From the NCBI GenBank assembly GCA_964187785.1, contig OZ076416.1:21080001-21144000 (forward strand): a stretch of DNA of 64,000 nt. The letters run 5' to 3'. This document shows positions 10,400 through 32,297 of the stretch, in pieces; the stretch's first letter is position 1; every line of letters begins with the position of its first letter. Source of the DNA: Amphiscolops sp. MND2022 (Eukaryota). The position numbers and the translations under genes were made by a program. The notes below the pieces were generated by a model. The model did not search any database and was not told the origin of the DNA. It saw only the letters and a program-made list of their open reading frames with translations.

Positions 10400-10584
10400 G
10401 ATGCTTCACATGTTGATCTAAGATACGTCACAAGTCGATTCACCAGTATCCCCAGCTTCGAGTCACTGGGCCGTACTGCCGTTCGCCCGTACCTACCCCT
10501 CGAAGCGTTGCCGGTGTGACAAGCGTCCAACCTGACTATGAGCTGTCCTGAGGTCACCCAATCCGTTCCCAGAGGCCACTAAAG

Positions 10585-11438
10585 TGTACTAGACTACGTT
10601 AGGCCTCCAGTCGTCTCGGTGTGGACCTAAGCAATTTTCAACTACGGAATGCCTCGCGAATATCGAAATTGCTTCCAAGGGCCATAGCGGGCTCAAAATC
10701 GCACACGTAGTAGGTTTTCACACACAAGTCCGGAAAACGAACTCAGATCGGGGTTAAACGGGGGTTAAACAGATCTATGAAACGGTCAGGAAGGGTTTAC
10801 AACAATTTTTGACTTTCCTCGAACAGTGTCAAAAATAACACAAGTGGCCCGTGTCCGTCACCTAGTGGTCGGAGTTGGCTCAAATTTGGCCAGGGGTACC
10901 TACACGCACGTAGGTACACAGAATTGAGCACCGTTGGGGGCTCCGACGCTTGTACACAGTTTCCCCTGAGCACAGACGTGCGGCATTCCTATGTATCAGT
11001 AGGGGTCAAAATGCACCCTAATCACACAATTTCTGAGCACTGGTTGCAGTCAGCGTTCTGGTTTTTCCCTAGCAGTGTTTCAGCTAGTATCAGTTACGTT
11101 GGTGAGCAACAAACTGTTCTCACTCTCTGGCTAAGGTATTCGGGTCTATTGAAAAAACGGCCTTTTTGTAACCTTTTTTGGACAGTACGTTTTCGGCTAT
11201 TTCTCGATGACTATCGTATCGACCGACACAAAAATTGGCACACGCTGCCAGTAGGTACCTACAATGCCGTTAAGATAGTCCAATTGCAGCGCTTGGGCAT
11301 GCGGAGGACTTCGGGTAGATCTGGACACCACTTTAGAAAAAAAACAGTCTTTTTTGACACTTTTTTCACAAATCGGCAAAGAAGGTCGACACTACAATTG
11401 TTACGGCAGGGTCAATGGGGTTAGCGTGTTGCCCCACA
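10585..11438 (-). repeat. candidate 5' LTR
   Basis: TG...CA termini (minus TGTGGGGC...TACA), followed by a degenerate PBS-like TTTAGTGGCCTCTGGG. Single copy only. Confidence 0.4.
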
Positions 11439-13904
11439 AGTCGTAGCAGTATCACCAACTTTCGATTGGCAGTACCCGTTCGGTGTAGGACACCGTCGGC
11501 TCTACAATTTCGGCTTTTTTTGGTTGTTTCGGTACTATTTTAGGTCGACACGTTAGAGAGTTTTTCTCTACTTTGGTGAGAGCTATACCCACCAAAGTTT
11601 CGGTACGAGTGTTTATTTTAGTGGTGGTTACGAAATTGTAATCACGCTTCAGCTATGGTTTGGGAATCTATGACCCAACCCTGGCAATCAGACAGTCCGG
11701 TTTTATGGAAATTCGATCAAATTCAGTGCGTTTTTCCACTTTTCTCAGCACTGAATAAGAATTTTTGCACGCGGTTTTCACCACAATGCGCTATTTTTTT
11801 TGCAAAAACAAAAAATTAGAGCGCCTAGGCTCTTGGGGTTGATTAGAGGTTTGGTTAATCGGGCTTTTGACACTACACTCTGCAAGGGTCAAAAACAGCC
11901 AAAATTACAAGAATTTCATCTTTTTCTGGTCTCTACACCAGTAAATCGATCAAAAAAAGCTTTTTCCAGTACCCTGGGGTTGTGATTCACTCGAGAAACT
12001 TCTTTACAACAGTGCCCCAGGCTTCTACACCTAGGTGCCATAGTGATTTTAGGGTGTTTTTCACCCTTTTTCCCAATTTTCGCGCATTTTTACTGCAAAT
12101 TTCCACTCTTTCGCCTAAAAGGGTTACGAGAACCTTTGAGCATTATTTTTCTCAGCTCTCTCAAGGTTCGAGGCTACTTTTGCCACCATACTGGCAGTGC
12201 TATTTTGGATTTACGGAGTGCCTGGACTCCAACAAAAAAATGCTCGAAAAACACGAAAATTCGTCCTTTTTTACAAGAATCGCAGTTTTCTTCGCTCAAA
12301 AGCGTTCCACTGGGTGACGTTACATTGAAAAAAAGAGTCACTGACCTGCACCAACGATTCTCCATGAAAAAAGGTGCAATCTCAAAATTTTCGCGAACCA
12401 TGATCCATCTGGACGACATCGCTGGTCCAGGGGGGTGCATCTTCGCCACGCAATTTCTCCATTACCAGACCAGCTAGAGACTTTCGGTTTGGACCATTAG
12501 CTTCGTTAGGAGTTGTTCTCTCCGTCCACCGAATTTCACCCCTCGCGGACGTCTCCACGAGAAATGGGAATCGACGAACCCAGACACTCCATTTCGCATC
12601 CCCTTGGCCCTGGTGGAGTATGGATTGTCGCTCATCGGTACCTGTCATACGTGGCTCAAAAAGCTGAAAATAGCTGCAAATACCTGTTAACACACGTAGC
12701 CACGTGCTACGAAGGACATTACCTGTAAAACAAACACCCGCTGATGGGTTGACATAACATGACATTCAAACACATGCATTTACGGATTTCTCAACCTCAA
12801 AATGCCATTTTCGAACCTGAAAACGCATTTTCTTCGGGATTTCTGGGTTTCCTTCGTTCTAGCGGCCAAGAATACATGCAATCGTTTAAAATAGGAGCAA
12901 AACTCTGGTTTCCCCTTCAGAGTCGAAACTGTCTTGGCGCTGAACACCGGAGAGTCAGATATTTTAAAACCATGAAGGAAAGCTTCCCGAAGACGATCCC
13001 TCTGTTGTCGCCAAAAAATGATGTTCCGATGTAACGAAAAGCGCTTAGCGTATATTCGCTACGCAGGGCGGAAAAACTGAAGCCATAGGTAATGATCCGG
13101 GACTGATCGCCATGATTCCAGTTCATTTTGTCCTCCTAGGGAATGCCGGTCCCGAGAAGGGAGAATCGTCTCTAGGGATGCTTTCTGACCGGTTCCGGTC
13201 TGTAACCGCTACTAGTCACATGAAATACGCTTTTTTCCTCGTATCCACTGTGTAAATAGCCTGTATAAATTGGGTTAAGCTGCATAGAACTGAATTAAAT
13301 GGTCCAGATGGAAATCCATCGTAAATGACATTAACATTAACAGAGGTGCTCTCGAGTAAAGAATTCATCAAACAAATCAATGAACACATTAAAAAGGCAT
13401 GAAAATCCAGTTTGGCGAATCTAAAATCACTCAGGGTGGCATGGCACTGGTCCTCGGGTTTGACACAACCCTGGGTCCGGGCGCTGCAATCACTCGGACA
13501 TGCTGGTTCTGTCTGATTTACGATGGGCACCATAGGAATTACCGCATGGGCTTACGATTTTTCGATTCTGTGACGTTGTACACGCTTCTTTTATCGTCGT
13601 GTCACTTTTTTTCCGCCTCGCGGGCCTTGCTTGTCCACGCTCTTTATGATTTTTGCGGGACTGGTACCTCGTGAACAGATGTTTGAGGGCCACGTCACTT
13701 TTGAACGAAATTTTCAGAAAATCGTCAAACTTCGAAAATTTTGTCTGTCATAGGGTGCCGTTACACTACTGCTACATTTGTCTCCAACTCAATTGAGGGT
13801 GCATACATGTTTTCAATATATGGCAGGTCATCAATTTCGAAGACGCGATAATACGAAGAGCCAAACAAAATTTTTGTGCAGAACGAACAAACGAAGTTAA
13901 GTAC

Positions 13905-14240: not shown

Positions 14241-14277
14241 CACGTCAACTTTACGACGCATATCCCTACACTTTTTG
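14241..14277 (+). repeat. left terminal inverted repeat
   Basis: CACGTCAACT then TTACGACGCATATCCCTACACTTTTTG (14251-14277). Confidence 0.75.
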
Positions 14278-14319
14278 AAAACTGCGGAATTGACGGCTAA
14301 CCGCAGGTAGCACCTACCA

Positions 14320-14700
14320 GACCTGGAATCCGCTGTTTAAAATGACGGATTTCAAAGACACACTTTATAACATGTGCAGCGGATTCCGCTTGCGATTTTT
14401 TCTGGATTCCGGGGACAAATCTCTTTACATTGAATTTTTGGTGGAATTCAGAGGCATATATTATTATATTAGACAACAGTGGATTCCGCAGTCGCTGTAC
14501 CGGAATCCGGGGTCACATAATAATACACAGCATAAAAACAGCGGATTCCAAGGACAAGCTTTCGTAATGTAGAGAAAAAAACAGTGGAATCCACTGCTGC
14601 GACAGCGGATTCCGCAACAGCACCAGTGGATTCCGCTGTTGTGCAAGCGAATTCCGCAGTTTTTGACAGCTGCTGTTTTTAACAGTGGATTCCACTGCAA
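14320..14700. repeat. left subterminal array of CAGCGGA(A/T)TCCGCTG-type palindromes
   Basis: About ten degenerate copies, e.g. CAGCGGATTCCGCT at 14377-14390. Confidence 0.85.
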
Positions 14701-15627
14701 GATATCGCGAAATATGTACCACACCTTGTTTATTCAGCACTTACAATATTTATGTTTTAGGACCATTTGTATTCCTTCTGGTTCATCGCCCATCAGCACA
14801 CATCAAGGACACTTCAATGAATGACACACATAATTTGGATTTGGCCTATTTAAATGTTTTAATTAATTAATTATTTCAAACTTAAAAATTTTTAGTTCAA
14901 TCAAATTTAGTCAATTTGTTCAATCTGCATATCAAACCTGGTTCAGCATATGTCAATTAATCTAGTGATTTGAAGAACTTGTAAATTAATATTTAATAAT
15001 ATTAATTATAGTATTGATTTGTAAAAATGTTATCATCACTTCATAATTTGTGCTAAATTTTTGTAACAATTAGATTGCGTGTTGTAATTAAGTTTTTATA
15101 TGCTTATTTTATCAATGAAGAAAAGCGCCAATTTTAGTCAAAATTCAGTTGTCAAAATTGCATTTTGTCCGAACTTTGTAAAACAAGTTACCACTCTTCT
15201 CTGTGTTTAAGAGAATGCACTGCTTGTATTGATTTGTAAGAACGTCATCAATATTAACTTCAGAAGTCAACTTAGGTCAGAAGTTTTGATAGCTCAAGAC
15301 TTTTTTTACCAGTTTAACGAATAAAACAAACCTTGTCTGAAAATAACATTGTTCAAAATAAGGACTGTGGAAATACTTTACACTATATCTAAAATTGATT
15401 GTCGTAAATTAAGTAAAGGTTTTAAAAAAAATGTTTAAAAAAGGAACTATTCCTTGTTATTAATTATTAATTCTTATTATAAATGATCTATTAATTAAAT
15501 TTATCAGTCAGCTAATTCGTTTTGATAATCATGAGTGATAATTGTATTTGAAGATTTTAGAGTTTCAGAGAGAATTAATCATAGTCATCAATATTGACTT
15601 CATAATTTGTGCTAAATTAATGTGTCG

Positions 15628-15641
15628 GTAACTATAGCAAC
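15628..15641. promoter_or_regulatory. RFX X-box-like motif in a promoter-like patch
   Basis: GTAACTATAGCAAC, with TCACGTGA at ~15712 nearby. Confidence 0.35.
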
Positions 15642-18250
15642 GCGCCGACCGTCATAAATGGGCTGGCGCCAATCTCACTCTTCTCTGTGTTTGAGAGAAC
15701 GAGGCATTGGTCACGTGACTGAAATTGTTCGATTACAGAGTAAAATAAACAAACCGTTTTGTCAGTGTGTGATTAGTTACTGCCAATACAAGTTGTTGAC
15801 CAGCCTGCTCCTTTCTTGAAATCTTAGTTGAAACCTGCTCCTATTGAATACCTTTCTTGAAATCTTGATTGAAATTCATAATCCCAATCCGATTTGTCTT
15901 AGTTTTAAATTAGATGAAGAATTCTCGAAGTCTTCTTACTAATCTTCTTCCTATTCAGTCTTCTTTTGATTCTAAATCAAGGTAAGTAACATTTATAATC
16001 CTCAACCTAATTGTCAAGATTATTTGAGAGAATCTCTGTATAAGATAAAAAAATATACTATATATGTATATATAAATATTTATACAATATATTATATTTA
16101 GTAAATATAAATAAAATATAATATATAAATATATAACGAGACCGGGCTCATTTAAGGGAGTCTCTGTATTTAGGATAATTATTTGTCTCTGTATTTATCT
16201 CAAAAAAGAAATTAAAACGAGTAGGTTTTAGCTGAACGGACACTTGACTAGGTTACTGAAAGATCCAAAATAGAATGTATAAAATGGCAGTTCTACAAGC
16301 AAAAAGTTATTCGGTAAAAAGTTCTTGGGCTGTCTTATCGCCGTAATCGAAACGTAGTTGCTCGAAGGGTTCTATCTGTCGTCTGGCCTTCATTACTGCG
16401 ACTCTCAGAGGGGGATCTGTATGGTCCAAGAGGATGCTAGCAGACTTCATGTTGGCTTCTCTGTTATCAGCGTTGTTTCTTCTCTGGGTCGCGTGGTTGG
16501 CTAAACGACCCATACCTAAACGTCATAAATAAATTGTAGAGATTGTTATTCTTACAACTCTAAGGATAAAACATCATTATTATTATTACATAAATTCGTT
16601 GGATGATCCACACAAATCTCGGAACTGGCATCTATAAGTCGCTTTGGTGGACCTGCTACTTCCATGACAAACTCGCTCGTAACGTCGGGTTGCTGCACGT
16701 ACTCCTCGAATTTCTGGCCGGTAATGACTTTCCCGTGGTAGTCTACAATTATTGTGTCTTTCTCCAGTTTTCCTAGACTGACAATGCCTCGACCAAATTT
16801 AGTGAAATGGGCATCGCAAATCCACTCCCACTTTTGGTTGTCAATTCGGTCTTTCAAATTTATCTGGTTTTCGTATGACAACCTGTCTCCTTTGCAGATG
16901 ATGAGATTGAACTGCGGCCTGCATATACTGGTCCGTGATGATGTGCTCTTCATCTATTCAAAACACAAAGCATCCAAACTCAATGATTTTTTCTAATAAC
17001 TATCGATCACTTAGCATGGGGCAGCTCCAGACAGGCCAAACACTCTTTTAGCTGCTTACCCTATGGTACCAAAACAAACTATTTTTTTGCCGCATTTGAT
17101 TTTCGATTTGTGCCATTGGGAAATTTTATCGTAATCTAATGCACTGCAATCTAAAGTACTCGAACGTGACGTAACCCAACCTAACCTGTTTTATAGCTAT
17201 AGTCATCGTTTTCTTGATGTCACATTTGTCCCAGCCCATCCTCGCATAAAAGGTGTTCAGGCGCTGCTCCAAATCACTGCAATTTGACAGTAACCATCCA
17301 TTGTTCTTGATCCAATGTTGCGCTCTAATTGTTTGCCGATGGTACCGTAATTGGTCAAGTCTGTGCTTCACCGCCTTGGAAACCTCTTTGTGGGTATAAT
17401 TTTCTGTCTGACTTTTCACCTAAAAAAGAATTTCCATTCCTTGGTTGAAAGCATAAGTTTAGAAAGGAAAGTCAATATTTTATTACCAAACGAAAAAGAA
17501 CAAAACCTGATTGATTACTTGCTTCTGTTTGCCAATGGTGAAACCTGGATCGCTTCGAAACGGCAGAAAACTCGCAACATGTCTCTCTAGGGTGGTCTCT
17601 TGAGGGTTATCGATGTGCTGCTGAAGCTAAAAGACGCAAACTTCGGTAAAAAGATTGAGAACATGCAGGATTTACTGCGAAAAAATTCGTGACGTAGATT
17701 CAATAAATCAAATCGGTCTCGCAATTAAAATTTCCATGAATTTGAAATAATTGTAAAACGAGTGGTGACCCTGGAAACATTTGAAGCAATTTAGGTGTTT
17801 CTGGGTTGAAATTTAAGTTTTTACCGTGTCTTTGAATTGGTCGCATAGTTGGCGCACTTTGAAATGTGTTGAGCCATTGGAATTGACGAAAAAGCGGTGA
17901 GTTCTCACTGTTCTTTTGTCATCTGCGAAAACCCTGTTGAAATTATCAAGACCTTCTTTTGGCAGGAATGCGGTCTTGCCTCCAGGTAGTATGTTTTCAA
18001 ACCGTCCACTAGCCATCGGGGAACAGTGTGCGACGATCTTATCGGAGAAAATTCAGCAGGCTCAACATAGATTGTGATTCATGCATCAACTGCTGTTTCA
18101 TTGTCTGTGTTCTCTTGCAAGGAAACGATGGCCTGTGTAACAGCATGCACTGTCAGCTCTATGATACCTTTGTCCATCATTGGTGGTGCTGCATGCTTTG
18201 ACAGGAAACACGCCAAAGCACGAAAGAGCATTGTTCTTTCCTTTTGTGTC

Positions 18251-18350
18251 AGAGCTTCCGTTTTCTTGTACTGCTCTACAATGTCCTTGATGGCTATCTC
18301 AGAGCTTCCGTTTTCTTGTACTGCTCTACAATGTCCTTGATGGCTATCTC
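18251..18350. repeat. exact 50-bp tandem duplication in a SET-gene exon
   Basis: 18251-18300 equals 18301-18350; shifts the reading frame. Confidence 0.97.
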
Positions 18351-18699
18351 AAGTTCTTCTTCAGTCGTCTCGCCACAAGTAGCCCTGACAGAAGTCTTCG
18401 ATATTTTCTAGATATTTTGAATACAAATTTCAAAAACAACTTCAAATGTTAGAATGAAAGTCAAATAATACTCAACAAGTTCAATTACAAATTCAAATGA
18501 AAATTCTTTTCCAAATTCAAACACAAAATGAATTTTAAAATTTAGGAAACACGAAGTTGTTTCTCAAAATTTTCGCTTATTTTATACGATCGTGCAAACA
18601 CTGTGAGGTGTGTGACACGTTCCGTCTTTTCTTGAAAGTGAAAGCTGAAAAAAAAAATAAAAATCCGTCACCGCTCAGCCAAGGCGGTAGCTGGAAATT

Positions 18700-18860
18700 T
18701 TCCTGGAGTATGGTACAGGAAACTGAAATCATAATGTATTAGGATTTGTCTGCGGATTCCGCTGTACATGTGTTAACCTTTGCCCCTAAATTCCGCAATG
18801 CTCTTTTGGAAGTCAATGATATGAAACATAAGACAGCGGATTCCGCTGCTATGATGAATA
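18700..18860 (+). repeat. diverged partial copy of the 218-bp unit in SET-gene intron 1
   Basis: GGTACAGGAAA...CTGCGGATTCCGCTGTACATG...CCTAAATTCCGCA matches the 24.6-25.1 kb unit. Confidence 0.8.
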
Positions 18861-19959
18861 AAACTTTTTTCGTGCTCTATGTGGTTCTAGAAGGTGATAA
18901 TCTCCCGCTTCAGTTTAAAATTTTCACTTGAAATTCAAAAACTGACCTCCGGAATATCATTTGTTGCAGAGCTAGCTGCTCTTTTACGACTTTCTTCAAG
19001 TTGCTCAGTCGACGAAGCTTCAAGCGGAGGAAGAAAAAGGTCCGGCGAATGTTCAGGTGGTGGAAGAAATTCACCAAACATGGTCGGAGGAAGTTCGTGC
19101 GAAATTCCATCTATGTTGAGCCATTGCGATTGATTCCAATCAAAATAAGACGGGTGTGAGTATTGGCGAACTACAGCCGGGCTCTTTCCGGTGGGGGTTG
19201 TCAAATATTCATGCGATCGTGAGAGAGGGGTTAATGTTGGAACTGGAGGATGAGGTAGCGTAAGTGAAAACGTCTCGGGTTGCACTGGCGTTGAAGTAAC
19301 TAGTTGAGGCGATTGAAGTTCTGTCAAATTTCCAAGATCTTCTAATGGTTGTGATTGAATTTGATGCGTTTGCAGAGACATTGTAGGTTCCTTCGAGGAA
19401 TAGAACGATGTACAATTCAAATTGACTGATTTCTAGTAGATCAAACTTATATAATGAATAGTATTATGATATTACTCTACTGAAACTGCTAATTACTTAA
19501 CTGATGATTGCCATCATAGTAATTTAACACTTCCACTTTCACAAATTAATAAAAGCCTCATCAGACGCAGCCAATGGAAATAATTGTAATTATATAATTA
19601 TAATGAGTATAATTTTATAATTATTTCTATTATAATTTTTGGCAGCGCCTGATGTGGTTCTTAATCATGTGGAAGTGTTAAAACCACACCTCATCTATCA
19701 TTTGACTTGAATCATCAGCACTTGTTCTCATTGTTCGTTCATTGGCCCGAAAGAATGCCCAAGTTTTCATCAGGACTTGAAAGATGAATGCGTAAAACAC
19801 ATGTATCTCGGATTGGACGGCTGAGACTTACGGCATGATAAAACCCTATCTAAAATAATAATATACAATCTATGTAACACACTCTAGAACAACATGGAGC
19901 ACCAAACGATTTTTTTCTTATAACAACAAACTGTTTTATACTCCATAATATTGCCTCCC

Positions 19960-20460
19960 AAAGAACCGCAGGGATACCTCGAGAAAATATCCAAATGAGC
20001 CTAGTAGCATAAAACAGTTGATTCCGTGGTTAGCGAGAGTGTTGCGCCTCATAACAGCGGAACCCGCTGTTTTGTATTCCAGATTGATGCCTTCCAAAAT
20101 CGCAGTGCGGAATTTAAGGACAAATGTTAATACATGTACAGCGGAATCCACAGGCAAATGTTAATACATTGCAATTTCAGTTTCCTGTACCATACCTCGA
20201 GAAAATATCCAAATGAGCCTAGTAGCATAAAACAGTGGATTCCGTGGTTAGCGAGAGTGTTGCGCCTCATAACAGCGGAACCCGCTGTTTTGTATTCCAG
20301 ATTGATGCCTTCCAAAATCGCAGTGCGGAATTTAGGGACCAATGTTAATACATGTACAGCGGAATCCGCAGGCAAATGTTAATACATTGCGATTTCAATT
20401 TCCTGTACCAGACCTTAAGAAAATATCCAAATCTGCTCAGTAGCATGAAACTGTGTATAG
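19960..20460 (-). repeat. tandem array of 218-bp units containing the palindrome
   Basis: CTCGAGAAAATATCCAAATGAGCC at ~19978 and ~20196; inverted relative to the 24.6-25.2 kb array. Confidence 0.92.
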
Positions 20461-21136
20461 GAATTTTAGTTTTTTTAAACCCTCTCTTGAAATTGCATTT
20501 TGGGACCAGTAATCTCAAATTTCCCAGGATGAAATCCTAATTAGCTAGAAGTCAAGTAGAATCTATAAGAATCTATCAGTGCATATATGTCTGTAATTGT
20601 CTTATAAGCGCCTATAAAAGTGCCTAAAATCGTCTACTGAAGCATTTGTGATCCGTTCCTCCAATGTGGCTAGGGAGTCGTCGCAGGGTACTTGGGAGCA
20701 GTCGCTCATTCCGAAACCCAGAGAAATGTCATTTAGAGTTTAAAACTTTCATATAACGAGAATACAGTATGCTAAGGCGCAGTTGGTGCAGTGAGGTCAA
20801 ATCGAATAAAGTAAATATCACGTAACGTTGCTTCAGTAACAGTTTCAGTAACGTTAGACATTTGTGATTGCAACATCTGCCGTACTAACTTGTGCATTGT
20901 GTCATGATTGCCTGTATGACTGATGCATATCTCTGAAAGTAGGAAAAGTAACAGCACGCGCGGCATGTAAGACTGATGCTTACCTCTGGATTTAGGAAAA
21001 GTATCTGTAATCTCTTAAAAACTAAGATCAAATGCTATTGAAGTAATTATTTTCCAACCTCTGCAATTATGACCTTGAATGTGAGAAATTGTATTAGGCC
21101 TAAAAATTTAACTGTTTGAAGGTTCTCTTCTGAAAT

Positions 21137-24100
21137 ATGCCCCAATTTCAATGCCCCACGTGCCAACTAACCCTCTCAAATAAGGGTAATCTGACCCGGC
21201 ACATCAACCAGAGTTGCGGTAAGAGAGAACAGACGCGCGGCACAAGAATGAAGTGCATGTTTTGTGGCTCTCCTACAGATGGCTCATTCTTCAAGGACGT
21301 GCAGCAGACTGCTGATCATGTGCTGACACTCCGATGCTGGAATGCTCGAAATGCCCTAACAGCGGAAGATCGAGCCAAATTACTGGAGCCCACACTGGAA
21401 AACTTTGTTCTCGTAAGAGACACCTACCCGGGCTGCAAGAAGGCCTTCTCGGCAGAAGGGAGGACGAGGAAGTTCTTCGATCAACCGCCACCGTCTAAGT
21501 TGGTTAAACGAGAAGTCCAAGTCCGAGAAGCCAGTGCGACATCGATTTCATCACCGTGGTGGGAGGTAATTCAATCAAACAAATAAATTTAATAAAAACG
21601 TAGCTTATGAGCATGAATAAGAATTAAGTCAACGGTTCTGTTTGATTTTGAATGAATGACATTTTTGAGTTCAAATGATTAATTTTTGAACAGGTTCCGG
21701 AAAGCAGCAGTCCTGTGGAGCCTGAGCATGCAGGTGTTGTTTCCTCCTCTTCCACCCTCCATTTTGCAACAGAGGCGGAAGAATATATTGCGGAAGAGTC
21801 TGTTGTTCTTCTTGAGGAGAAGCAAGAAGAAGAGGCAATCGCTTCCATGGTACTTTTGGAAGCCTTCAAGGTTGCAGAAGTCAACCACATTCAAGTTCAA
21901 GAGCCTAAATGTGTATGTATTTTTTTGAGTGACTGTTTCATGTTTCATGTAATATTTTTCAGGATGTGTAGTTTTTATGGAATTCTAGTTTTAAAAGCAT
22001 AATGGTTTGGAGGGATTTAAACTTCTAAAACCGATAATGCTTTAGGAAAAGTGGCAACAGAAACGACGACGTTTGCACAAGAATGTATCACGAATGCCAG
22101 TGACACTTCCAAACCTGAGCAGATGTACGCTTACCATGCGAAGGATGAACATGACGAACACGAACCTCATGAAATCGTTCGCTAGCATCTGGGAACTGCG
22201 TGACCTTATGAGTCAAGTAAGAACTTCCCTGGATTTGAGAATGAGATCTCTTCTCAGGATCTTAGAATGCAATTTCTTCTCCTCCAGACTCTAGATCTAA
22301 TCGGTTTTGAGTCTCTGGATTCAGGAATAAGATCTCTTCTTTAGACTTAAATCTCTGGTTTTAAGAATAAGATCTTTTCTCTAGATATAAATCTCTGGGT
22401 TGACGAGTAAGGTTTTGTCTTCTGTGTAATGTAAATTGGAGTAAATTTAGATTCCAAATGCTACCTCGATGCGGCGTGACATTACAGCAGAAGAAGTCAC
22501 ACCAGAACTGCTGTCAGACCCGGCTTTTTTGGACGGGGAGTATGTCTTCGTCATCTGTGACGGTTTGGCCATCCCCGGCTTCAACACGAAGCTAACCAGA
22601 GAGAAGATGAGCCGAATGTCGTCTGTTCAACAGATGATGCAGGGGTACAGTGGCAACCCCGTAACACTTCGTTATTTGACGACGAAGTTCGAGGTTAGCA
22701 GAGTCAATGTAACTGCTAAAAGAGATACAAACATCAATTTTGTTCTCTGTTATAAATTTGAGAATACATGTACCTGACCTGATATTTATTATTTAGGAAG
22801 GGAAGAAAGTTGTGCCAGGTAACAGAGTTACCGAGATGATGGAGAGTGACCCCCCCAAATTTTTCAACGTCATCGATGCCGAGGCAAACAAGTGCCCAGG
22901 AGCCTCATTCAAGAAGCCTAGCTTTCTAGACGAGGTTTCCCTTGGGCATATGAACTGGGAACAGACACCTGCAGCATTGCGTCCAGTGCGTGAATCGAAT
23001 TATTTGCTGATTTCACAAAGTGGCGCAATCACGGGGTTCCACCAGGATTTTTCATCCACAAGTGTGCTGTATTATCTGGCCAAAGGTTGGTACCAGGTTT
23101 TAGTACAAGTAAAATGAAAATCGTGTTTTTTTTTCAAAATAAGTCAAGTGTTTGGTGGCTGACGGACTATTGTTACAGGGGTTAAAGCTTTCCATGTTGT
23201 GAGGCCCACTGCCAGAAACGTTGACTTGTTCAAGGCGTTCAAGAATCTCCCCAGGCAAGTAAAATTGTTTATACTTACACTACACAGTGCTTTTCTCTCT
23301 GTTATGCATGTAAGACTGATAACCGGGAAAAATTTATTACTGTTATTGATTGTTTAGAAGGGACCTCTTTTTTGGCACCCATGAAGAGCTTGACATGGGC
23401 GGCTGCACAAAAGTCATTCACTTCGAGGGACAGGCGCTGATTCTTCCTGCGAAGATGATCCACGCTGTGGAGACTTTCGGCATGTCAGTTGCTCTGGGAG
23501 TCAACTTCATTCACCGCCTGCACGTGAAGAAAGCTGCCGAAGAGTTCTCTGAAGAGCGGTGCCGACATGACCCCTACGACGAATGTTATCCCCACCTTCC
23601 CCGACTTTTGTTCACGCACATTGCGAGTTTGATGAGGTACATTATTTATTTTATTAGTTATAATATCACTTTTCATGATACATGTAGTTTTGTATATAGT
23701 CTGTTTGAAATAATTATGAAACAATCATATTCCTAAACACAGAGGTTGCATAGTTGTACTATCACTTTTCATGATACGAGTAGTTTTGTATAAAGTCTGT
23801 TTGAAATATTTATGAAACAATCAGATTCCTAAACACAGAGGTTGCTGTATTTTAGTTCTTCTGCATCCGTGGACAAGCTTGAGAAGGCACAGCTGCTCAA
23901 CGCTGCTATGATTGTGCAGAAGACGAATTGTCACACTGTTGAAAATTCCATTGACACCGTTTGCCAGAAAGTATGTAATTTTCATGCAAACTTTCATATT
24001 ACTTTTTGACTTTGTCTAGCTAGAAGGTCTTTGCTTTTTGTTTTTGTTTTTTTTTTGTTTTTTGCTTGTCGGTGAAACAAAATATGTGTTTCTATTTATT

Positions 24101-24434
24101 ACGGAGGAATTTTGTTTCTAGTATGGAGTTACATCTGCATTAATTGTGCAGAAGACGAATTGTCAAACTGTCGAAATTTCCATTGACACCGTTTGCCAGA
24201 AAGTATGTAATTTTCTTGCAAACTTTCATAATACTTTTTGACTTTGCCTGACTAGAAGTTTTTTGTTTTTGTTTTTTGCCTTTTGCTTGTCGATGAAACA
24301 AAAAATGTGTTTTTCTATTCATTACGGAGGAATTTTGTTTCTAGTATGGAGTTACATTCGAACAGATGACAAGCTGGCTTTCCTGTGACATCGCAGTGCC
24401 TTCGGGGTCCTACGGGACTTCCCATCAAGGATGA
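21137..24434 (+). CDS. C2H2 zinc finger plus JmjC domain protein (KDM2/KDM7-like), 9 exons, ~629 aa, apparently intact
   Basis: Exons 21137-21565, 21694-21912, 22046-22216, 22451-22693, 22797-23085, 23179-23254, 23358-23636, 23856-23970, 24366-24434 join in frame (1890 nt). CPTC...HINQSC finger; YLLISQSGAITGFHQDFSSTSVLYYLAKGVKAF, LILPAKMIHAV, GVNFIH parallel the KDM2/7 core; HxD at 23040-23048, distal H at 23461. Confidence 0.9.
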
Positions 24435-24579
24435 TCCTGATGAGAACTATTTATTAACTTTTCAAATTTTTTAATTTTACTGATTTTTATTGAACATACA
24501 TTAGATAGAGAATTGATGATTTTAGTATAATTTTATGAATTTCTCAGCTATTAGGCTGCTAGATTTCAAACTGCTAGGT

Positions 24580-25190
24580 AGATTTGGATATTTTCCCAAG
24601 GTATGGTACAGGAAATTGAAGTCGCAATGTATTAGCATTCGTCTGCGGATTCCGCTGTACATGTATTAACATTGGTCCCTAAATTCCGCACTGCGATTTT
24701 GGAAGGCATCAATCTGGAATACAAAACAGCGGGTTCCGCTGTTATGAGGCGCAACACCCTCGCTAACCACGGAATCCACTGTTTTATGCTACTAGGCTCA
24801 TTTGGATATTTTCTCGAGGTATGGTACAGGAAACCGAAATCGCAATGTATTAACATTTGCCTGTGGATTCCGCTGTACATGTCTTATTATTGGTCCCTAA
24901 ATTCCGCACTGCGATTTTGGAAGGCATCAATCTGGAATACAAAACAGCGGGTTCCGCTGTTATGAGGCGCAACACTCTCGCTAACCACGGACTCCACTGT
25001 TTTATGCTACTAGGCCTATTTGGATATTTTCTTGAGGTATGGTACAGGAAACCGAAATCGCAATGTATTAACATTTGCCTGTGGATTCCGCTGTACATGT
25101 ATTAATATTGGTCCCTAAATTCCGCACTGCGATTTTGGAAGACAATAATTGTGAAGCGCAACACTCGCTAACAGCGGAATTCACTGTTTA
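24580..25190 (+). repeat. tandem array of 218-bp units, inverted partner of 19960-20460
   Basis: GGATTCCGCTGTACATG recurs at ~24647, ~24865 and ~25083. Confidence 0.92.
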
Positions 25191-25403
25191 ATGCTCCAAT
25201 TGTTTCCGACTAGCAAAAACCGACTTCTCCTATATCAAATACTCAGAAAGACTATGATTTTGCCCTCAACAACTTTTCAAGATGAACGACATAAGTTTGT
25301 ACGTGAACAACTCAATTGAACAGAACAAAAGAACAAAATATACAGAAATGTTGTGAAAACGAACATAAACACAACTAACAAAAAGAAACCTACGAAATTA
25401 GGT

Positions 25404-28400
25404 TCATGTTGATACTGTTTCCTCAGTATCTGCTGCTTTTTCCTCATCGATCTTTCTTTTGTTTCTGTGGCTCTTCAGGGCTGAGATAGCAGAAACTTTT
25501 TGACCTTGTTCACTGCACTGCCTCGCTAACAAAGGGCGCACATCTTTAACTTGCAATTTCTTGACATTTGGTCCGGGTAACATTTCGTACTTTTTCGGAT
25601 CCAGGATGCGATCTGATTCCAACGAGTCAAGTACAAACGAAAAGTGAATGAATTTCCAATCTCCTCCAGCAAATTTGCGACATAAAAGTCCTGTTGGAGT
25701 TGCCGCATTTTCCGATACAGACTTCTTTGGCACGTCCATCAACTCTTTATCGTTCGTTGATTCTTTGACAACATCCGTCGACTTCCTCAACTCTTTTTCG
25801 TCCTTCATAACGACAAAGCAGTTTGGACAAGTTGAGTGCGAAAATAACAATGTTTCAGCACTTGCTTTGGTGCAAACTGTTCCGCCCATCTCTGCTATCG
25901 CATTTTGGATATCTTCATTTTTCATTGAACCAAAGTTACCCACTACAAAAAAGTACAATCCCAAAAATCGGTGTTTCTTGTTCCGTGTCTCACCGACAGC
26001 AATCGAAGCGCACGAAACAGGCTGCAGGCAAATATCATTGTAAGTCTTCGATTCTTCGTCAGCTTGATTGACGATCCCACCAATTCCTCGGGCTTTCGAT
26101 AACAAATCGTTAATTGAAACTTGTTTTGCTTTGAGGGTTTGTTTCCTGAATAGCTTCAGCAAGGAAAATTGAAGCTCGAAAAAAAGGGGGTCTTGGGTTG
26201 ACTGCTTTCCTCCGCCTCTCATCGTCTTGCTCTGGAATGCTTTGTTTGCATTATGGTTAGACTTCTCCAAACCCTCGCACATATGATTCCAAGGAGTTAT
26301 AATATGTCCGCTTTCAATTAGTTGTGGATAAAGTAGCATCTTCAGCTTGTAAGGCGTAAGTCCTTTATCTTTGCCAAAAAGTAACATTGAGACTTGGTAA
26401 TACGTCTCTGCCCACTTGGTGAAACTTGTAATGTCAAGACCGGTCCGTGAACTGCGCAAAAGAATAGTGCACATGTTAAGGCTTTCCCTCATGAGCTCAG
26501 CTGCATCTGAAATAGAAATTCTTCTTCTTCTTTCCATACACCTTCGAATAAATTTGTCATGTCTGGAATCATATCAGAAAACTCGTCTTTGTTGGCAATT
26601 GCTGTAAGTGCTCCCGAACAAGAAAGTGACACCGCACCGACAGTCTTCACCTTCTGTCCAGATTTGGTAGTCGTATCGAACTGGAAGTGCGGTTTCTTCA
26701 CATCTCGTTTGGTCAGATTTTCTTCCAAACGCGCAAGTGACTCCTTCTCTTTGGGATGCTTGTCATCAACAAGCTTCTGTGCAATTTTTTTAAGGTCATT
26801 TTCGACACATCTTGTTATCATGTGCGTTACATCAGGGCAAACGCATCGTATGTCGTCGTAGCTTACGAGAGACGTCGCAGGTAGATCAGTGCGGAAAGGA
26901 ACTGGAACTTGGCTTCTGTATCCAGATTTTGGATTGACTGTTGTAGGCAGAAACGTGTCGTCCGATCCCAGAAACAGTGGCATGAGTGACGGGAAATCTG
27001 AGCTGCGATCGTTTGAGATTCCAAGAATTAACCTAAATGTAAGAAAAAATTTGACATCTTGTAGGCTCAGGAAGTTCTCAAATTACATTACAGCAAAAAA
27101 AATTACAAAGACATAACAGCAGGAGAATAAACAGAAAGAATCTCTCTTAAATCCAGAGTTTTTGAATCAGGCTGCAACCATGTATGATGCTCCCAGTAGT
27201 TTGTAGCAAAACATTTTGCAGCTACAGTGGCATGAAATAATTTGACAAAACTCTATAGGACTGTCCATCGTTCAGTTTTAAATTGAAGCGGTATCAAATG
27301 TTGCTCACCTGAGTAGGAACGGGTTGTCTCCGCTATAAGTCAATTTGACGCCGAGTTCTCTCAACGCAACAGTCTGCTTGAACAGCCACCCGGATGTTTG
27401 GTCCCCAACTTTTTCGTATCCCACATTTTGCTCTAAAGCAAACCTGCTGTCGTTGCCTCGGTACGCAGCAAAACAGAAGACACTGTCAGATGATTGCACA
27501 CTTATTTCCTCACAGATCAATCTGAACGCCAGTCTTGTTACTTCTGTTCCTCCAATTGCGGCACCATCTCCCCAGATATCAACTTTTAGTCCCGAGATGT
27601 TTGTAGTTTGAAGGATTGCGTATGCAGCAAGTTTGACACATCGAACAACATCCACTCGGAATCCACTGAAAGTTCTTTCCGGATTGCAGAGTTTAATGAA
27701 ATGTTGGGTGAATTTGGCATTGGACGTGACAATCGTACGAATTGAGGGTACCAAGTTAAAGCCCAGGCCAGGAGCTGACAATCGAGAACGAATCAGGTTG
27801 ATCACGTCATTTACGTTACCAGTCTTCGTATGAATTGCCAATGCGTCGCGAAAGTCAGAACAACTACCCCTGTCTATGAACAAGCCAGCACTAAGGCCCC
27901 CTATGATGTTCTTTTGCTTCTTGGACGCTCCATTACGCCTCTTCCTTTGTTCAGCTTCTCTGTGTGCTGCTTCAGTCAACCCACGAATACTAATCCCTTT
28001 GTACCTGATGCACCAAATCACTTGTCTCCAAAAGCTCTTCAAGTTCAACTTTTTCCCGGCTTTACACACATCCTGAGCATTTTTACGTAAAGAAAGTTTC
28101 GGCCTGCTCTTAATTCGGTTAGCTGGTTTGATGGATCCGCCAGATGAGCCAGAGGAAACGGGCATACACGAGTTGTTAGGGGCAGGAGCATTGAAGGGGA
28201 CGACGTTTGGGACAGATGCTTTGAATGGGACGTTGTTTGGTACAGACGCATTGATGGGGACGTTGTTTGGGAAAGATACATTGTAAGGGTCAACATCAGG
28301 AATAAGCTCTCGGGAAAAAAAGAAGGAGACAAAATCTTTCCTGACTTGGTTCCATGTGTGATCTCTCAATCCGCAAACTATGATAAGTTTCATTATTTTT

Positions 28401-28810
28401 GCAGCTACGTAGACTGCTTCACGTCCTCCTTTTTTGGCTTTGACTCTTCTGACCAAAGCTTCTGGATCTCGATCCAGCGAAGTACCAGTAACAATTTGTT
28501 TGACGGCTGTAAGCATATTACGATACCTGTTCTTGGAATTTATTTCCGCAAGAAATATCTTCTCTAGAATGTCGCTGTTGATAAACTGCCTATTGCATTC
28601 GACAATCAACAAGTGTTGATGACATAAGTCTTGTATGTAATTTGATCCTTCCATTGCAGGATGAAGATGAAAATCAAATGAGAATGGAGAGGTTAATATC
28701 ACCTTATATGTTCGCAAATCAACTCTAATACTGCGTTTAGTGTTATTTGACGCTTTTTCAATTAATTTGACGTTTTTTGAAATGATTTGACGCTTTCCAA
28801 AGGGTGTCAT
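25404..28810 (-). CDS. RAG1/Transib/Chapaev-like DDE transposase with C-terminal BRCT-like domain; one intron, one frameshift (~1043 aa if repaired)
   Basis: Intron 27033-27308 (AG|GTGAG...TTTAG, phase 2). D in IWGDG (27566-27568), D in YSGDNPFLLR-LILG (27326-27328), CPDVTHMITRCVE, TPY, E in EGLEKSNH (26265-26267). A single missing base near 26520 separates ORFs 26489-26983 and 25404-26537. Confidence 0.82.
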
Positions 28811-28955
28811 AATGCGTCTCTAACCGATAGACGGGTGTCAGTTTAGCACCTCGCTTTTACTAAAAGTTTTACTGGTAGTCAGTCGTTGTAATCATTATAC
28901 AGTTGTCGAGTTACTCTACCTGTTTACCTTCCTTACCTGAATAATATTTTCCAGT
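28811..28955. promoter_or_regulatory. 145-bp divergent intergenic region between transposase and Tudor-like gene
   Basis: Two ATGs face away from each other (28810 minus, 28956 plus). Confidence 0.5.
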
Positions 28956-30503
28956 ATGTCTACGCCCGCGGAAATTTTTCGTCCAAACGAAATGGTTCAT
29001 GTTATTGACGAGAGTATATCTAGGTGGACAAAGGCTAAAATTATTGGCATCGTTAGCGACTGGTCTGTTAAAATAAAATGGATAGGCTACACTTCAATCT
29101 ATCCTTCAGAAACTATTGAGGTACCCGAGGAAAAGCGTACAGATCAGTCGTCATGGAACCTTCGAAAAGTTATAGAAAAGACACATTCCTCCATACTTTC
29201 CAGAGAGGACAGACGACAAACACCAAAGGCAGTACAACTCGAGTACAACCCCAAACATTGTGTTCATGACGATGAGGTGAGTGTCAGTCCAAATAATTTT
29301 TGTTTTTCGAAAATCAGTGCGGTTTAGCGACTGCGGAATCCGCTGCTGTCTAATATAATAGGCTTTGCATCCGGAATCTACTGTAAACTTAATGTAAAGA
29401 GATTTGTCCCGGGATTCCGCTGCACTTATGAAGTGTGTCTTTGAAATCCGTCATATAAAACAGCGGATTCCAGGTCCTGTAGGTCCAAAATGCTGCGAGC
29501 AGTCAACTCCGTTCTTTTCAAAAAGTGTTGGGTTATGCATGGCATCGTAATGTGACATGTACATTGTTTGATTGTATTTCTCTGGGATTAGGAGAAGAGT
29601 ATTCGGATTACCTATTAAGACTTAGTCCATGTAAGATTGTACACCTCTGGAAATAGGAGAAGTGTTATTTATTAGGTCTAATTTTTTATTTCTGCGCTAA
29701 TTAGGATTCAGTCCATGTAAGATTTGTAAACTCTGCAATTAGGCATTTTTGAAAGGATCTCTGCATTTAGATTTAACCTTTTTTTCTAGGTAGACTTCTT
29801 AGACGAATCGGAAGACGTTGCCGTTGTGAAGCATGGACGAATACTACTTAATGATCTGTTCCTACAACAAATGATGGTTTCCGTAGAAGGCGAAATGCCC
29901 CGATACGTTTCGTACAGCGTACTACGGAACCCAGTCCAACAAGTTAGTGCCATCGTCCCGAAAGTAGAAGACGACGATGACGACGATGACGACTCGATGC
30001 CTCGTCCGCCGGCTCCAAAAAAGCCCCGCTCTCAGAAGGAGAAGCCCTTAGAGATTGACATGATCAATTTAATCCCCGTGCTTCCAGACGGGGACACCAG
30101 GACAAGCGTGCCATTGACTTGCGCTCCGTGCACAAACGGCATTCTTTTTAAAGGGACCAAGGCATTAGATCGAGGAGGATACATTTGCACAATTGAAATG
30201 CTAGAGTACGTCATTTCAAGGAAGAAAGCATTTGTCAGTTTATCATGGGATGAAAATGCGGACTTCACTAGCAGAATTCCAGCGTCTTCAGTAAGGCTCC
30301 CGGAAGAGAATTACACAACATTGGACCCCGTGAATCTAGACAGCATGGTTTGTCCTATTGATGGAACATATGCTGTATTTTCTGCCATCAAGCGGGCCAT
30401 AGGTCTGTATCGAAAAAAAACATTCTGCGAGTTTCAATGTGTGCCCCGCAACAACTTTCACCAGGCGATGTGTTGGATTCGAAGCAGATTCAGCTCGGGA
30501 TAA
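28956..30503 (+). CDS. Tudor/chromo-barrel-like repeat protein, 2 exons (~344 aa)
   Basis: Exon 28956-29276 (GAG|GTGAGT) joins 29790-30503 (TTCTAG|GTA) in phase 0. FRPNEMVHVIDESISRWTKAKIIGIVSDWSVKIKWIGY fits a Royal-family barrel pattern; acidic/basic linker DDDDDDDD...PKKPR. Confidence 0.6.
29325..29560 (-). repeat. inverted copy of the element's left end inside the Tudor-gene intron
   Basis: Reverse complement aligns with ~14245-14500 (CCTGGAATCCGCTGTTT..ATGACGGATTTCAAAGACACACTT...GGACAAATCTCTTTACATT...TATTATATTAGACA). Confidence 0.9.
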
Positions 30504-30756
30504 TGTACGTATTTCAAAATAAAATTGGTCAATTAGGAGGATCATTAAGTAATTGTTAACTAAGAGCACTGAAACAATCCAAGATGATCGTTTTTTGAGT
30601 TCTTGTTATTGTTTAGGTCAGATTTGCTGCTCATATTGAAACTGGACTCAAATTGAAAACAAAATTGGTCAATTAAGAAAATCATTAAGTATTTGTTAAC
30701 TAAGAGCAATGAAACAATACAAGATGATAGTTTTTTGAGTTCATGTTAATGTTTAG

Positions 30757-31023
30757 GTCAGGTTTGCTGCTCATATTGAAACTGGACTTCGCGGATGTCA
30801 TCGCTCGTGGGACTCACTCTTTGGAGAGCGGTGGGACATTTTGCCAGGAGACGGAGAAGAGTCGCTGGACACCCTCATCAGAGCAATCCGATTCTCTGAG
30901 ACCCAAGACTTTCTCTTCCGAACCATTAAGGTGCAGATAAACTCTTGTGAAGGTCGCTTCCGAAACGAAGAAAAATATCGGGAAATCCTCAATATCAACT
31001 CTAAACACAATGAGGGACTCTAA
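30757..31023 (+). other. probable further exon of the Tudor-like gene, or an orphan exon
   Basis: TTTAG acceptor, then open frame VRFAAHIETGLRGCHRSWDSLFGERW...NEGL*. The preceding exon ends in TAA just before a GTACGT donor-like site. Confidence 0.4.
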
Positions 31024-31089
31024 ATTTGTATTGTGTGTATTATTTATTGTATGCTAGCATCAAATAATAAATCAAGTTTAGAATCAAGA

Positions 31090-31830
31090 TCATCTATCCT
31101 AATCCCAGAGAAAATAGTAGAGTACATGTAGTTTTAGTAGCATGTAGGCCAATAATACATAATGGAGACAGTAATTTCAATCTCAGAGACAATAGTTGTA
31201 TACATGTATTATTAATAGCATGTAGGCGTATTATACATAATCCTAATCCCAGAGGCAATAGTAGCTTACATGTATTATTAATAGCATGTAGGCCTATTAT
31301 AAATACATAATGGAAACAGTACTCCTAATCCAACAGGCATTAATAGATTACATTCATGCCTATAATACATCAGGGAGACACAATTATCTTAAACACAGAA
31401 ACTGTATACACCCTGTAGAGGTTTCAGACAATGTATATTAATTAGTCGGCTTTTATTTTATAGTTGTATTGTCTCATTGATGCTCGTTTATTAATACCTG
31501 CCAATTTAGTGCAGATGAAGAATTGTTCACCGAAAAGAGAGTACAAAATAGTTAGAGTAAAGTTTGAATTCAACGAAATCGTTTCTTATCATAGAACTAG
31601 ATTACAACACAATCAATTAAACACAAAATACAGTAGTAGATTACGAGCAATACAGAATTATGATACTTTAATTTATCTCAGTAATCTTAATCCCAGAGAC
31701 TATAGTAGAATACATAATGGAGACAGTAATCCTAATCCCAGAGACAACAGTGGATTCCATACATGAAGGCCTATAATACATCAAGGAGGCTTGTTTATCC
31801 TAAACCCAGAAACTGTATACGCCCTATTAA
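31090..31830. repeat. degenerate minisatellite with CTAATCCCAGAG cores
   Basis: Repeated (C/T)TAATCCCAGAGA...TACATGTA...GCATGTAGGC segments; inverted relatives at ~29580-29710. Confidence 0.7.
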
Positions 31831-31879
31831 ACACAATAATAAGTGTATACAGCAAGCTTTATACTAGCCCGCACTCGTC

Positions 31880-32235
31880 TGCGGATTCCGCTGTCATACA
31901 ACTTGAAGCAGATGTCACGCAGAGCTGTCAGTGGATTCCGCTTCACAAAACAAACATTTTAATACTTGCTTGCATTAGTCTACGGAATCCGCTGTCACTG
32001 CCCCGGATTCCGCTGGTACTGGTCCGGATTCCGCTGTCACTCCCCCGGAATCCGCTGTAAGCAGCGGATTCCACGATTTCGAACTGACCAATGCAGCGGA
32101 TTCCGCGATTTTGCCATATCGTCAACTGAAATCGCGAGAAAATATACACTGCGGTATTAGTCCCTGAATTCCACGCGGCGAATTCCGCTCTTTGCGGTTG
32201 GCATGTTTTAAAGCTTGGCCCAGGATTCCACTGCT
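31880..32235. repeat. right subterminal array of the same palindrome
   Basis: About ten copies of (C)GGATTCCGCTG / GGAATCCGCTG immediately inside the right TIR. Confidence 0.85.
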
Positions 32236-32259
32236 CAAGCGGCTCAACTTTGAGCTGCA

Positions 32260-32297
32260 CAAAAAGTGTAGGGTTATGCGTCGTAATGAAGCTTGTG
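32260..32297 (-). repeat. right terminal inverted repeat
   Basis: Reverse complement reads CACAAGCTTCA then TTACGACGCATAACCCTACACTTTTTG; one mismatch to the left core. Confidence 0.75.

Follow-up and report, generated by a model that had tools for sequence, protein, structure and literature searches.

In RAG1-RAG2, recombination is tied to trimethylated lysine 4 of histone H3 (H3K4me3), and among the anti-silencing factors of plant transposons, VANC of VANDAL and TnpA of Spm are non-enzymatic DNA-binding proteins, of which TnpA binds subterminal repeats. Here we describe a locus of Amphiscolops sp. MND2022 at which a transposase with a predicted RAG1-like fold lies beside genes for a putative histone methyltransferase (SET domain), a putative histone demethylase (JmjC domain) and a partner protein. 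The window, which is the whole stretch analysed, comprised 64,000 nucleotides (nt) of the forward strand of contig OZ076416.1 (positions 21,080,001 to 21,144,000, GenBank assembly GCA_964187785.1) and contained no runs of N. Taken as a whole, and with the role we assign to the chromatin genes included, we consider it probable that window positions 14249-32288 represent one defective copy of a multi-copy, recently active cut-and-paste DNA transposon of about 18 kb.

Enzymes of epigenetic marks are known from other mobile elements. TET/JBP dioxygenases occur on fungal KDZ, Plavaka, ESTA and other elements (PMC12730594), and HarbingerS elements with a SET domain have been described (Kojima and Jurka 2014, as cited in PMC12730594). 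Repeated association of transposable elements with Chromo, PHD and SET domains is documented in the survey of Grau-Bove et al. (bioRxiv 10.1101/2021.11.30.470311), which mentions no case of JmjC. In the full-text literature, a scope that leaves Repbase outside and an unpublished entry there possible, we found no paper linking a RAG1-like or CMC-type (CACTA, Mirage, Chapaev) transposon such as Transib, Chapaev or EnSpm with JmjC, SET or BRCT domains.

A mobile unit present in many copies

A protein search with the largest open reading frame (ORF) led to a contig of the ENA assembly ERZ25074608 that aligned collinearly with the window (87-97% identity); the match ran from window position 32288 to the end of the contig, and the sequence past 32288 was unrelated. 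In all, at least twelve other contigs of one assembly carried collinear copies at 85-99% identity. One locus (L008/L031) matched the window at 99.95% identity over 20.4 kb, so that the window derives from the same genome or from one almost identical to it. The order of SET, JmjC, transposase and partner was collinear in all other copies, to the limit of each contig, and the DNA bordering the copies differed. Right flanks were of five kinds (AAGCTT in the window, TTTTAC in L001, ATCCGT in L004, TTCAAA in L005 and TAGGCT in L010) and left flanks of six (GTCAA in the window, CTAAA in L011, TCCAG in L029, GCTGT in L030, CTTTA in L032 and L034, TCGTT in L033). A preliminary description of this DNA, made from its sequence, had proposed a single mobile unit and suggested looking for co-occurring copies with different flanks; the twelve contigs supply such copies, with homology ending at the inverted ends and the gene order unchanged, and the element is mobile as a single unit. 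The same description had allowed that the genes might be single-copy host genes. They are multi-copy, the SET exon falling in a cluster of 45 member sequences and the partner exon in 17 clusters, the largest with 76 members. Its account of four intron-containing genes in two divergent pairs was confirmed, with SET (-) facing away from JmjC (+) and the transposase (-) from the partner (+).

Since homology to other copies starts and stops exactly at 14249 and 32288, these positions were taken as the ends of the element, which spans 18,040 bp (Table 1). The inverted arms reported earlier were also recovered: the 27-nt stretches 14251-14277 and 32260-32286 are complementary at 26 of 27 positions, a pattern with no further occurrence in the window and none in 100 shuffles. 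An intact 29-bp end reads 5'-CATTACGACGCATAWCCCTACACTTTTTG; the terminus 5'-CATTACGACG was found in 11 ends from different copies, and the homology edge in all copies was 5'-CATTACGACGCATA(A/T)CCCTACACTTTTTG. The consensus of the terminus is CATTACG, from which the left end of the window copy departs by an A-to-T change at position 2 (CTTTACG). Termini ending in CAC, as first described, were rejected, as the other copies place the true ends 8-9 bp further inside, and the CAC triplets at 14241 and 32297 belong to copy-specific flanking DNA.

Palindromic arrays inside both ends had also been described and proved to be a property of the element. The 9-mer GCGGAATCC occurs at 18 exact sites against 0.24 expected, all of them within 14.3-32.1 kb of the window; it forms part of the near-palindrome GCGGAWTCCGC, which is arrayed at 21-bp spacing just inside either end. 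Two further features were absent from that account. Arrays of a 218-bp repeat lie at three internal places, and two of them (19974-20458 and 24564-25149) are mutually inverted, with 477-nt arms (19974-20450 and 24564-25040) that are 95% complementary. A fragment resembling the left end lies at 29320-29547 and is present in other copies too. Together with the true left end, this fragment makes a second possible end pair, enclosing 15.3 kb.

The divergence among copies, together with an internal-deletion derivative (L010, joining 28790 to 17492), one copy with a nested long terminal repeat (LTR) retrotransposon and several with internal tandem duplications, is what a transposon family with activity into the recent past would show. 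The nested LTR retrotransposon lies in L006 (ctg180833) at 7064-12798, where the match in window coordinates overlaps by 5 bp (window 20851-20855), and next to it come another retroelement and a stretch in which part of the host element is repeated. In L012 (ctg158302, 3990-10120, 98.5% identical), a 2,046-bp segment equivalent to window 27904-29949 stands in three tandem copies and covers the 5' part of the transposase, exon 1 of the partner and the end-like fragment; in L032 and L034 the SET region is tandemly duplicated. These tandem duplications may be real rearrangements or assembly artefacts. Contigs L009 and L010 end just past the SET gene, at the equivalent of window position ~16130, and the match of L007 fragments there. 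Window 15000-16200 is a variable AT-rich repeat region, which is probably the cause of the assembly breaks and of the difficulty in recovering full copies.

The transposase and its partner

The transposase is about 1,080 amino acids (aa) long and is encoded in two exons separated by a 276-nt GT..AG intron. It belongs to a family of 179 representatives at 50% identity in a library of 1.8 billion proteins, with full-length members of 1,000-1,300 aa and clusters at 90% identity of up to 128 member sequences. The source of all members was an assembly in ENA, Logan or JGI, and no member bore an informative name. Scans of 185,579 prokaryote genomes and of IMG/VR yielded no relatives, a limited negative as these scans were pattern-based. 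An alignment of 17 members gave the conserved motifs (V)DIWGDG, GKDSR, SGDxPF, CPDxxHxxxRxVExD, TPYKLK and HMxEGxEKSNHH...TMRGGG, and the candidate catalytic motifs of the window transposase are VDIWGDG, SGDNPF and CEGLEKSNH. A BRCT domain was recognized by Pfam in 9 of the 17, and Transposase_21/24 was not matched.

The relationship to RAG1 was indicated by structure. For a full-length relative (P0006), the core (residues 300-840) was modelled with AlphaFold on a 68-sequence alignment and reached a predicted local distance difference test (pLDDT) score of 91.3 and a predicted template modeling (TM) score of 0.91. In a Foldseek search of the PDB, the best 48 matches were all to RAG1 of mouse and zebrafish, HzTransib of Helicoverpa, or amphioxus BbRAGL, with E-values down to 4e-6, a probability of 1.0 and TM-scores of 0.33-0.51 over ~545 columns; the next fold was Hermes (hAT), at a TM-score of 0.26. 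Mapped on the model, the aspartates of DIWGDG belong to the first strand of the sheet, that of SGD comes directly after the fourth strand, and the glutamates of EKSNH stand where a helix begins. Read from this secondary-structure map rather than from a superposition, the D, D and E motifs would occupy the positions of an RNase-H-fold DDE (aspartate-aspartate-glutamate) triad. The aligned stretch ahead of the glutamate, TPYKLK...P.L...G.I..PW.HM.EG.EKSNHH, may resemble the segment of RAG1 around E962 (compared as TPYKLK..P.L...G.I..PW.HM.EG.EKSN), a likeness of use as a lead only. The claim of the preliminary description that the element is RAG1-related was therefore upheld by the fold and lost its CAC cue.

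The N-terminal part of the transposase holds in-frame repeats of 4 x 30 bp (window 28175-28294) encoding decapeptides of the VPxNA type, and the corresponding part in a sister family (L002, ~10200-10900) holds many PPTMDxETMDSHA units. This region is a variable low-complexity linker.

The partner gene had been labelled Tudor-like, a guess for which the sole basis was a beta-rich pattern with many tryptophans and other aromatics. The label found no support from the tools applied: Pfam gave only a marginal SH3_1 hit (E 0.05) and no Kelch or PHD match, two profile searches of the PDB returned nothing, and the AlphaFold model had a pLDDT of 40, at which its Foldseek result is meaningless. The position of the gene was more informative. 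In metagenome relatives from other projects (L014, L017, L024), the partner again lies divergently upstream of the transposase; as this pairing is kept even at ~35% transposase identity, partner and transposase are the conserved core of the element. In these short relatives nothing convincing was found by way of inverted ends, and an exact scan of JGI metagenomes for the inverted-repeat pattern gave no match. In L014, a PLAC8-family gene lies at 5886-6887, ~300 bp past the transposase stop; if it belongs to the host, that element is compact, with partner and transposase only.

The SET and JmjC genes and the state of the window copy

The writer and eraser of the preliminary description both stood up. 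Two exons of the window gene aligned collinearly with Pfam SET, one with positions 1-60 of the profile (E 0.08) and the other with 63-105 (E 0.025), and the homologous exon of the sister family scored 27.6 bits, above the cut-off. The translation contains GRG, ANH and FDYGD, the N-half with GRG being encoded at 16555-16953 and the C-half with NH and FDYGD at 16310-16522, and the protein ends shortly after DYGD. In a profile search with the N-half, KMT5A/SETD8 was within the top 12 PDB hits, weakly so (E 0.04-0.08 over 30 residues). A perfect 50-bp tandem duplication (window 18249-18348) lies where a putative SET exon has its 5' edge and may disrupt the SET reading frame; L009 apparently has it likewise, L001 has a single unit, and the match of L033 is ~55 bp shorter.

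The JmjC gene carries its zinc finger in ORF piece 21137-21583, HxD in 22797-23095 and the second histidine in 23350-23640. Its N-half matched KDM2A, KDM7 and PHF8 in the PDB (E 0.006-0.04) and its C-half PHF8 and KDM7 (E 0.003). The individual E-values are modest, and the two halves agree, matching independently at collinear positions in the same chains. The iron ligands are intact (FHQD for HxD and IHAV for H), as are an upstream threonine and the lysine of the small middle exon, and the sister-family homologue matched Cupin_8/JmjC at 8e-4. On these matches the gene is predicted to be of the KDM2/KDM7/PHF8 (JHDM1) type.

That SET, JmjC and partner belong to the element follows from their constant order in the copies, their presence in relatives and the selective constraint on them. 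The sister family, represented by L002 and L003 of the same genome, has an intronless 1,119-aa transposase that is 50% identical to that of the window, and its homologues of the partner (30-42%), SET (37-59%) and JmjC with C2H2 fingers (40% identity) accompany it, with repeat arrays between the genes there too. As the contigs of other relatives are too short, SET and JmjC are confirmed only for these two families of one genome. Just downstream of the sister transposase (L002, 14711-15073) lies a small cysteine-rich ORF with weak RING-type (E ~0.001) and CxC3 (E ~0.06) matches, which may be a further accessory gene.

Ratios of nonsynonymous to synonymous substitution rates (dN/dS) between the window and diverged copies were 0.08-0.39 for SET, 0.19-0.60 for JmjC, 0.33-0.34 for the partner and 0.48-0.65 for the transposase, and the bootstrap intervals excluded 1 in most. 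The SET and JmjC values were as low as or below those of the transposase, and both genes are, judged by these ratios, evidently under purifying selection. Because copies decay neutrally after insertion, the values understate the constraint in the active lineage. The JmjC cassette was more diverged than its surroundings, with 86% identity to the window as compared with 94% for the adjacent SET block in the same copies (L029, L030, L032, L011), and with a dS of 0.33 as compared with 0.05-0.10 for the rest of the element. As identity changes at 19967-19974, where a repeat array begins or ends, this switch suggests that the 218-bp arrays are points of recombination between subfamilies.

The window copy itself lacks ~106 bases at 26518 that are present in all other copies and encode the conserved residues VLKQMYPSLFSKPNP (sister-family counterpart ILKQFLPELFDKPRP). 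By this deletion, its transposase is frameshifted ahead of the catalytic glutamate and the BRCT domain. The ENA assembly of the same locus has the deletion likewise; L009/L035, L011 and L029 retain an intact exon 2. In the partner gene, an A8 run at ~30417, where most copies have A7, shifts the last ~35 codons of exon 2; this could be a homopolymer assembly error. With the transposase frameshift, the partner shift and the mutation at position 2 of the left end, the window copy is non-autonomous at best.

Table 1. Features of the element in the window (window coordinates)
Feature	Position	Strand	Remarks
Left terminal inverted repeat, CTTTACGACGCATATCCCTACACTTTTTG	14249..14277	+	Position 2 mutated relative to all other left ends (CATTACG)
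Left subterminal GCGGAWTCCGC array	14278..14740	.	Spacing partly 21 bp; repeat family D3
SET-domain gene	16310..19432	-	ORF pieces 18938-19432, 18082-18348, 17129-17419, 16555-16953, 16310-16522
Internal 218-bp repeat with GCGGAATCC	18671..18888	.	One unit; D1
218-bp repeat	19974..20458	.	2.2 units; left boundary of JmjC cassette; D2
JmjC gene with N-terminal C2H2 zinc finger	21137..23640	+	ORF pieces 21137-21583, 22451-22774, 22797-23095, ~23175-23255, 23350-23640
218-bp repeat	24564..25217	.	Three units; right boundary of JmjC cassette; D1
Transposase gene	25404..28810	-	Exon 1 28810-27309; intron 27308-27033; exon 2 27032-25404
BRCT domain of transposase	~25587-25967	-	BRCT_2, 31.7 bits (cut-off 27.3), window exon 2
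Copy-specific deletion of ~106 bp, transposase exon 2	26515..26521	-	Segment present in all other copies
Partner gene ("Tudor-like" in the preliminary description)	28956..31020	+	ORF pieces 28956-29279, 29790-~30480, ~30790-31020
Internal left-end-like fragment, in partner-gene intron	29320..29547	-	80-83% identical to 14258-14502 (245 bp); degenerate inverted repeat 23/29
Right subterminal GCGGAWTCCGC array	31860..32259	.	Repeat family D3
Right terminal inverted repeat, CATTACGACGCATAACCCTACACTTTTTG on minus strand	32260..32288	-	

The element is flanked by retrotransposon debris. Upstream, window 4048-10399 (-) holds a Gypsy-type gag-protease-reverse transcriptase-integrase region, and downstream there are two more reverse-transcriptase ORFs, at 35332-36519 (+) and 53480-54280 (-). 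The latter is the one reverse-transcriptase ORF of a 12-kb stretch (44-56 kb) that has a strong skew of G over C and T over A and no tandem repeats. Neighbouring loci contain DUF1759 (BEL/Pao-type) retrotransposon genes, which, given the known distribution of that family, point to a probably metazoan host.

Readings of the element and comparison with known systems

In the mechanism that we propose, the transposase, by its fold a DDE enzyme of the RAG1/Transib type, would recognize the 29-bp ends (5'-CATTACG...CGTAATG-3'), bind there, cut the element out and insert it elsewhere. The partner would be a required accessory subunit, either as the binder of the GCGGAWTCCGC subterminal arrays, like TnpA in CACTA elements, or as a chromatin reader, and the two proteins would assemble on ends and arrays for cut-and-paste transposition, with the BRCT domain linking the transposase to phospho-dependent repair or chromatin factors. 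SET and the zinc-finger JmjC would be driven by a divergent promoter region in which the 218-bp repeats of the element abound and would rewrite histone lysine methylation on and around the element, so that it resists silencing or conditions its sites of excision and integration. Such self-serving chromatin editing, whether as anti-silencing or as site conditioning, is in our judgement their most likely role.

Other explanations of the cargo were weighed against this role. The main alternative, which we regard as unlikely, holds that the cargo manages the double-strand breaks of the element and steers end joining instead of countering silencing. Its parts would be a SET8-like writer of H4K20 methylation, a PHF8/KDM7-like eraser of H4K20me1 and H3K9me, a partner that reads methyl-lysine and the BRCT domain of the transposase. 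The nearest solved relatives, KMT5A/SETD8 and KDM7/PHF8/KDM2A, fit such a module, as does the BRCT domain, and RAG-type enzymes leave hairpinned ends that require end joining, as is established for RAG and Transib. Against it, the similarity to KMT5A is weak (E ~0.05), the substrates of SET and JmjC are unreadable from sequence, and the partner is without a demonstrated Tudor identity. It is also quite unlikely that the transposon is real and SET and JmjC are passengers captured from the host, of no service to the element, in the manner of Pack-MULEs. Gene capture is common in large DNA transposons, and the short metagenome relatives show only partner and transposase in the few kilobases available, so the enzymes are perhaps a later addition. 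However, both genes span their full length, contain introns and keep their catalytic motifs intact, they recur beside the 50% identical sister transposase at comparable divergence (37-59%), and their dN/dS values give no sign of less constraint than on the transposase.

The unity of the element was questioned in two further ways. A composite of nested elements, in which JmjC with its 477-nt arms is a transposon within a smaller SET/transposase element and 29320-29547 is an older right end, would account for the 95% complementary arms, for the breakpoint between the 86% and 94% identical blocks and for the internal end-like fragment. We consider it very improbable, as the arms consist of the 218-bp repeat of the element and have no termini of their own, the gene order is constant in all copies, and the sister-family loci also have such arrays between genes. 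Recombination of subfamilies at the arrays explains the mosaic, and JmjC as a nested element in its own right was rejected. A host gene cluster lying between two unrelated short inverted-repeat elements, and itself immobile, has only the lack of a clear target-site duplication to speak for it. It is contradicted by thirteen contigs with multi-copy genes in the same order, differing flanks and homology that ends exactly at the inverted ends; it was rejected, and we give it practically no chance.

The reading of the locus as a mobile element with a chromatin-editing cargo also has results to contend with. No target-site duplication of at least 3 bp borders the window copy (GTCAA on the left and AAGCT on the right). 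The flanks share only the 2-bp AA, which is explicable by chance and was seen in the sole copy with both flanks, so the duplication of 4-5 bp foreseen by the preliminary description was not borne out. A 3-bp duplication of the CACTA type was likewise not seen, as CAA and AAG differ in this copy, and an A/T-dinucleotide target was dropped, as additional left flanks end in AG and GT. No second copy with both flanks was recovered by contig walks from five anchors, which were halted by contig ends or by nested retrotransposons and duplications, and no empty site or paralogue of the window flanks was present among all fetched loci. For the transposase, a Pfam search of 17 members at E<=5 returned none of the transposase families, BRCT being the sole hit, and phmmer and hmmsearch comparisons of single sequence and profile with the PDB gave no match at E<=10; sequence-level homology was found neither to Pfam RAG1 nor to the RAG1 or Transib chains of the PDB. 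A zinc signature of the form C(2)C...H(3-4)H has been reported for CACTA, Mirage, Chapaev, Transib and RAG1 (Kojima 2025, PMC12730594); the 17-sequence alignment has no conserved CxxC or Hx3-4H. With neither a sequence-level match nor the zinc motif, membership in Transib proper is not supported. The SET matches of the window gene lie below the Pfam cut-off, and the window copy is, as its sequence reads, predicted to be unable to make the transposase.

A bolder proposal, which we think doubtful, is that the element represents a deep, undescribed branch of the RAG1/Transib fold that lost the zinc module, gained BRCT and always had a non-Kelch partner. Its SET8-like writer, its PHF8/KDM7-like eraser and possibly a reader would form a self-contained histone-methyl toolkit that couples cleavage to chromatin state and break repair, a natural parallel, made of different parts, to the H3K4me3 link of RAG1-RAG2.

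If the reading of a mobile element that edits its own chromatin is true, the RAG1/Transib fold is wider and more diverse than sequence searches reveal, with 179 representatives of which none is functionally named. The element would clearly exemplify a DNA transposon that carries a histone methyltransferase together with a histone demethylase, both under selection, and the self-editing of element chromatin would become testable with defined genes. The core of partner and transposase with BRCT would offer a new point of comparison for the dependence of RAG1 on a chromatin-reading partner.

By its fold the element is nearest to RAG1/Transib and by its architecture closest to CACTA-type elements, and it lacks some of the defining features of each group. 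With Transib, RAG1 and ProtoRAG (RAGL) it shares the overall fold of the transposase core over ~540 residues, and these were the only strong structural matches. As in RAG1L/RAG2L, the transposase stands beside a second accessory gene, and its D...D...E order is that of an RNase-H-fold transposase. Unlike Transib and RAG1, it has a C-terminal BRCT domain and neither the zinc signature nor detectable similarity in sequence; its ends read CATTACG, whereas theirs carry the CAC heptamer, and their 5-bp target duplication was not seen. The partner differs from RAG2 in having no Kelch or PHD Pfam match, and the size of 18 kb with subterminal and internal repeat arrays sets the element apart from Transib and RAG elements.

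Like VANC and TnpA, the element may encode a protein that counters host silencing, and as in Spm there are sites in subterminal repeats; there is no homology to these factors, which in contrast to SET and JmjC are non-enzymatic. CACTA/EnSpm, Mirage and Chapaev elements share with it the 5'-CA...TG-3' termini, CATTA and CACTA being one base apart, as well as short subterminal repeat arrays, large size and more than one encoded protein. For the CMCT clade, target duplications of 2-5 bp are reported (PMC12730594), as compared with at most 2 bp here, in one copy and compatible with chance. The element differs from the CMC group in its BRCT domain, in its histone-enzyme cargo and in the absence of Transposase_21/24 and the zinc signature; Repbase consensus sequences were outside this comparison, and it may correspond to a named unpublished family.

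The closest parallels to the cargo are KDZ, Plavaka, ESTA and HarbingerS, DNA transposon lineages with an enzyme of an epigenetic mark as stable cargo, HarbingerS being the precedent for SET. Here, the transposase lineage is another, a methyltransferase and a demethylase occur together with a conserved non-enzymatic partner, and the presumed target is histone lysine, not the 5-methylcytosine of DNA as in the TET/JBP elements. The fusions surveyed by Grau-Bove et al. and SETMAR are mostly single-domain fusions within one protein, whereas the genes of this element are separate and form a fixed cassette.

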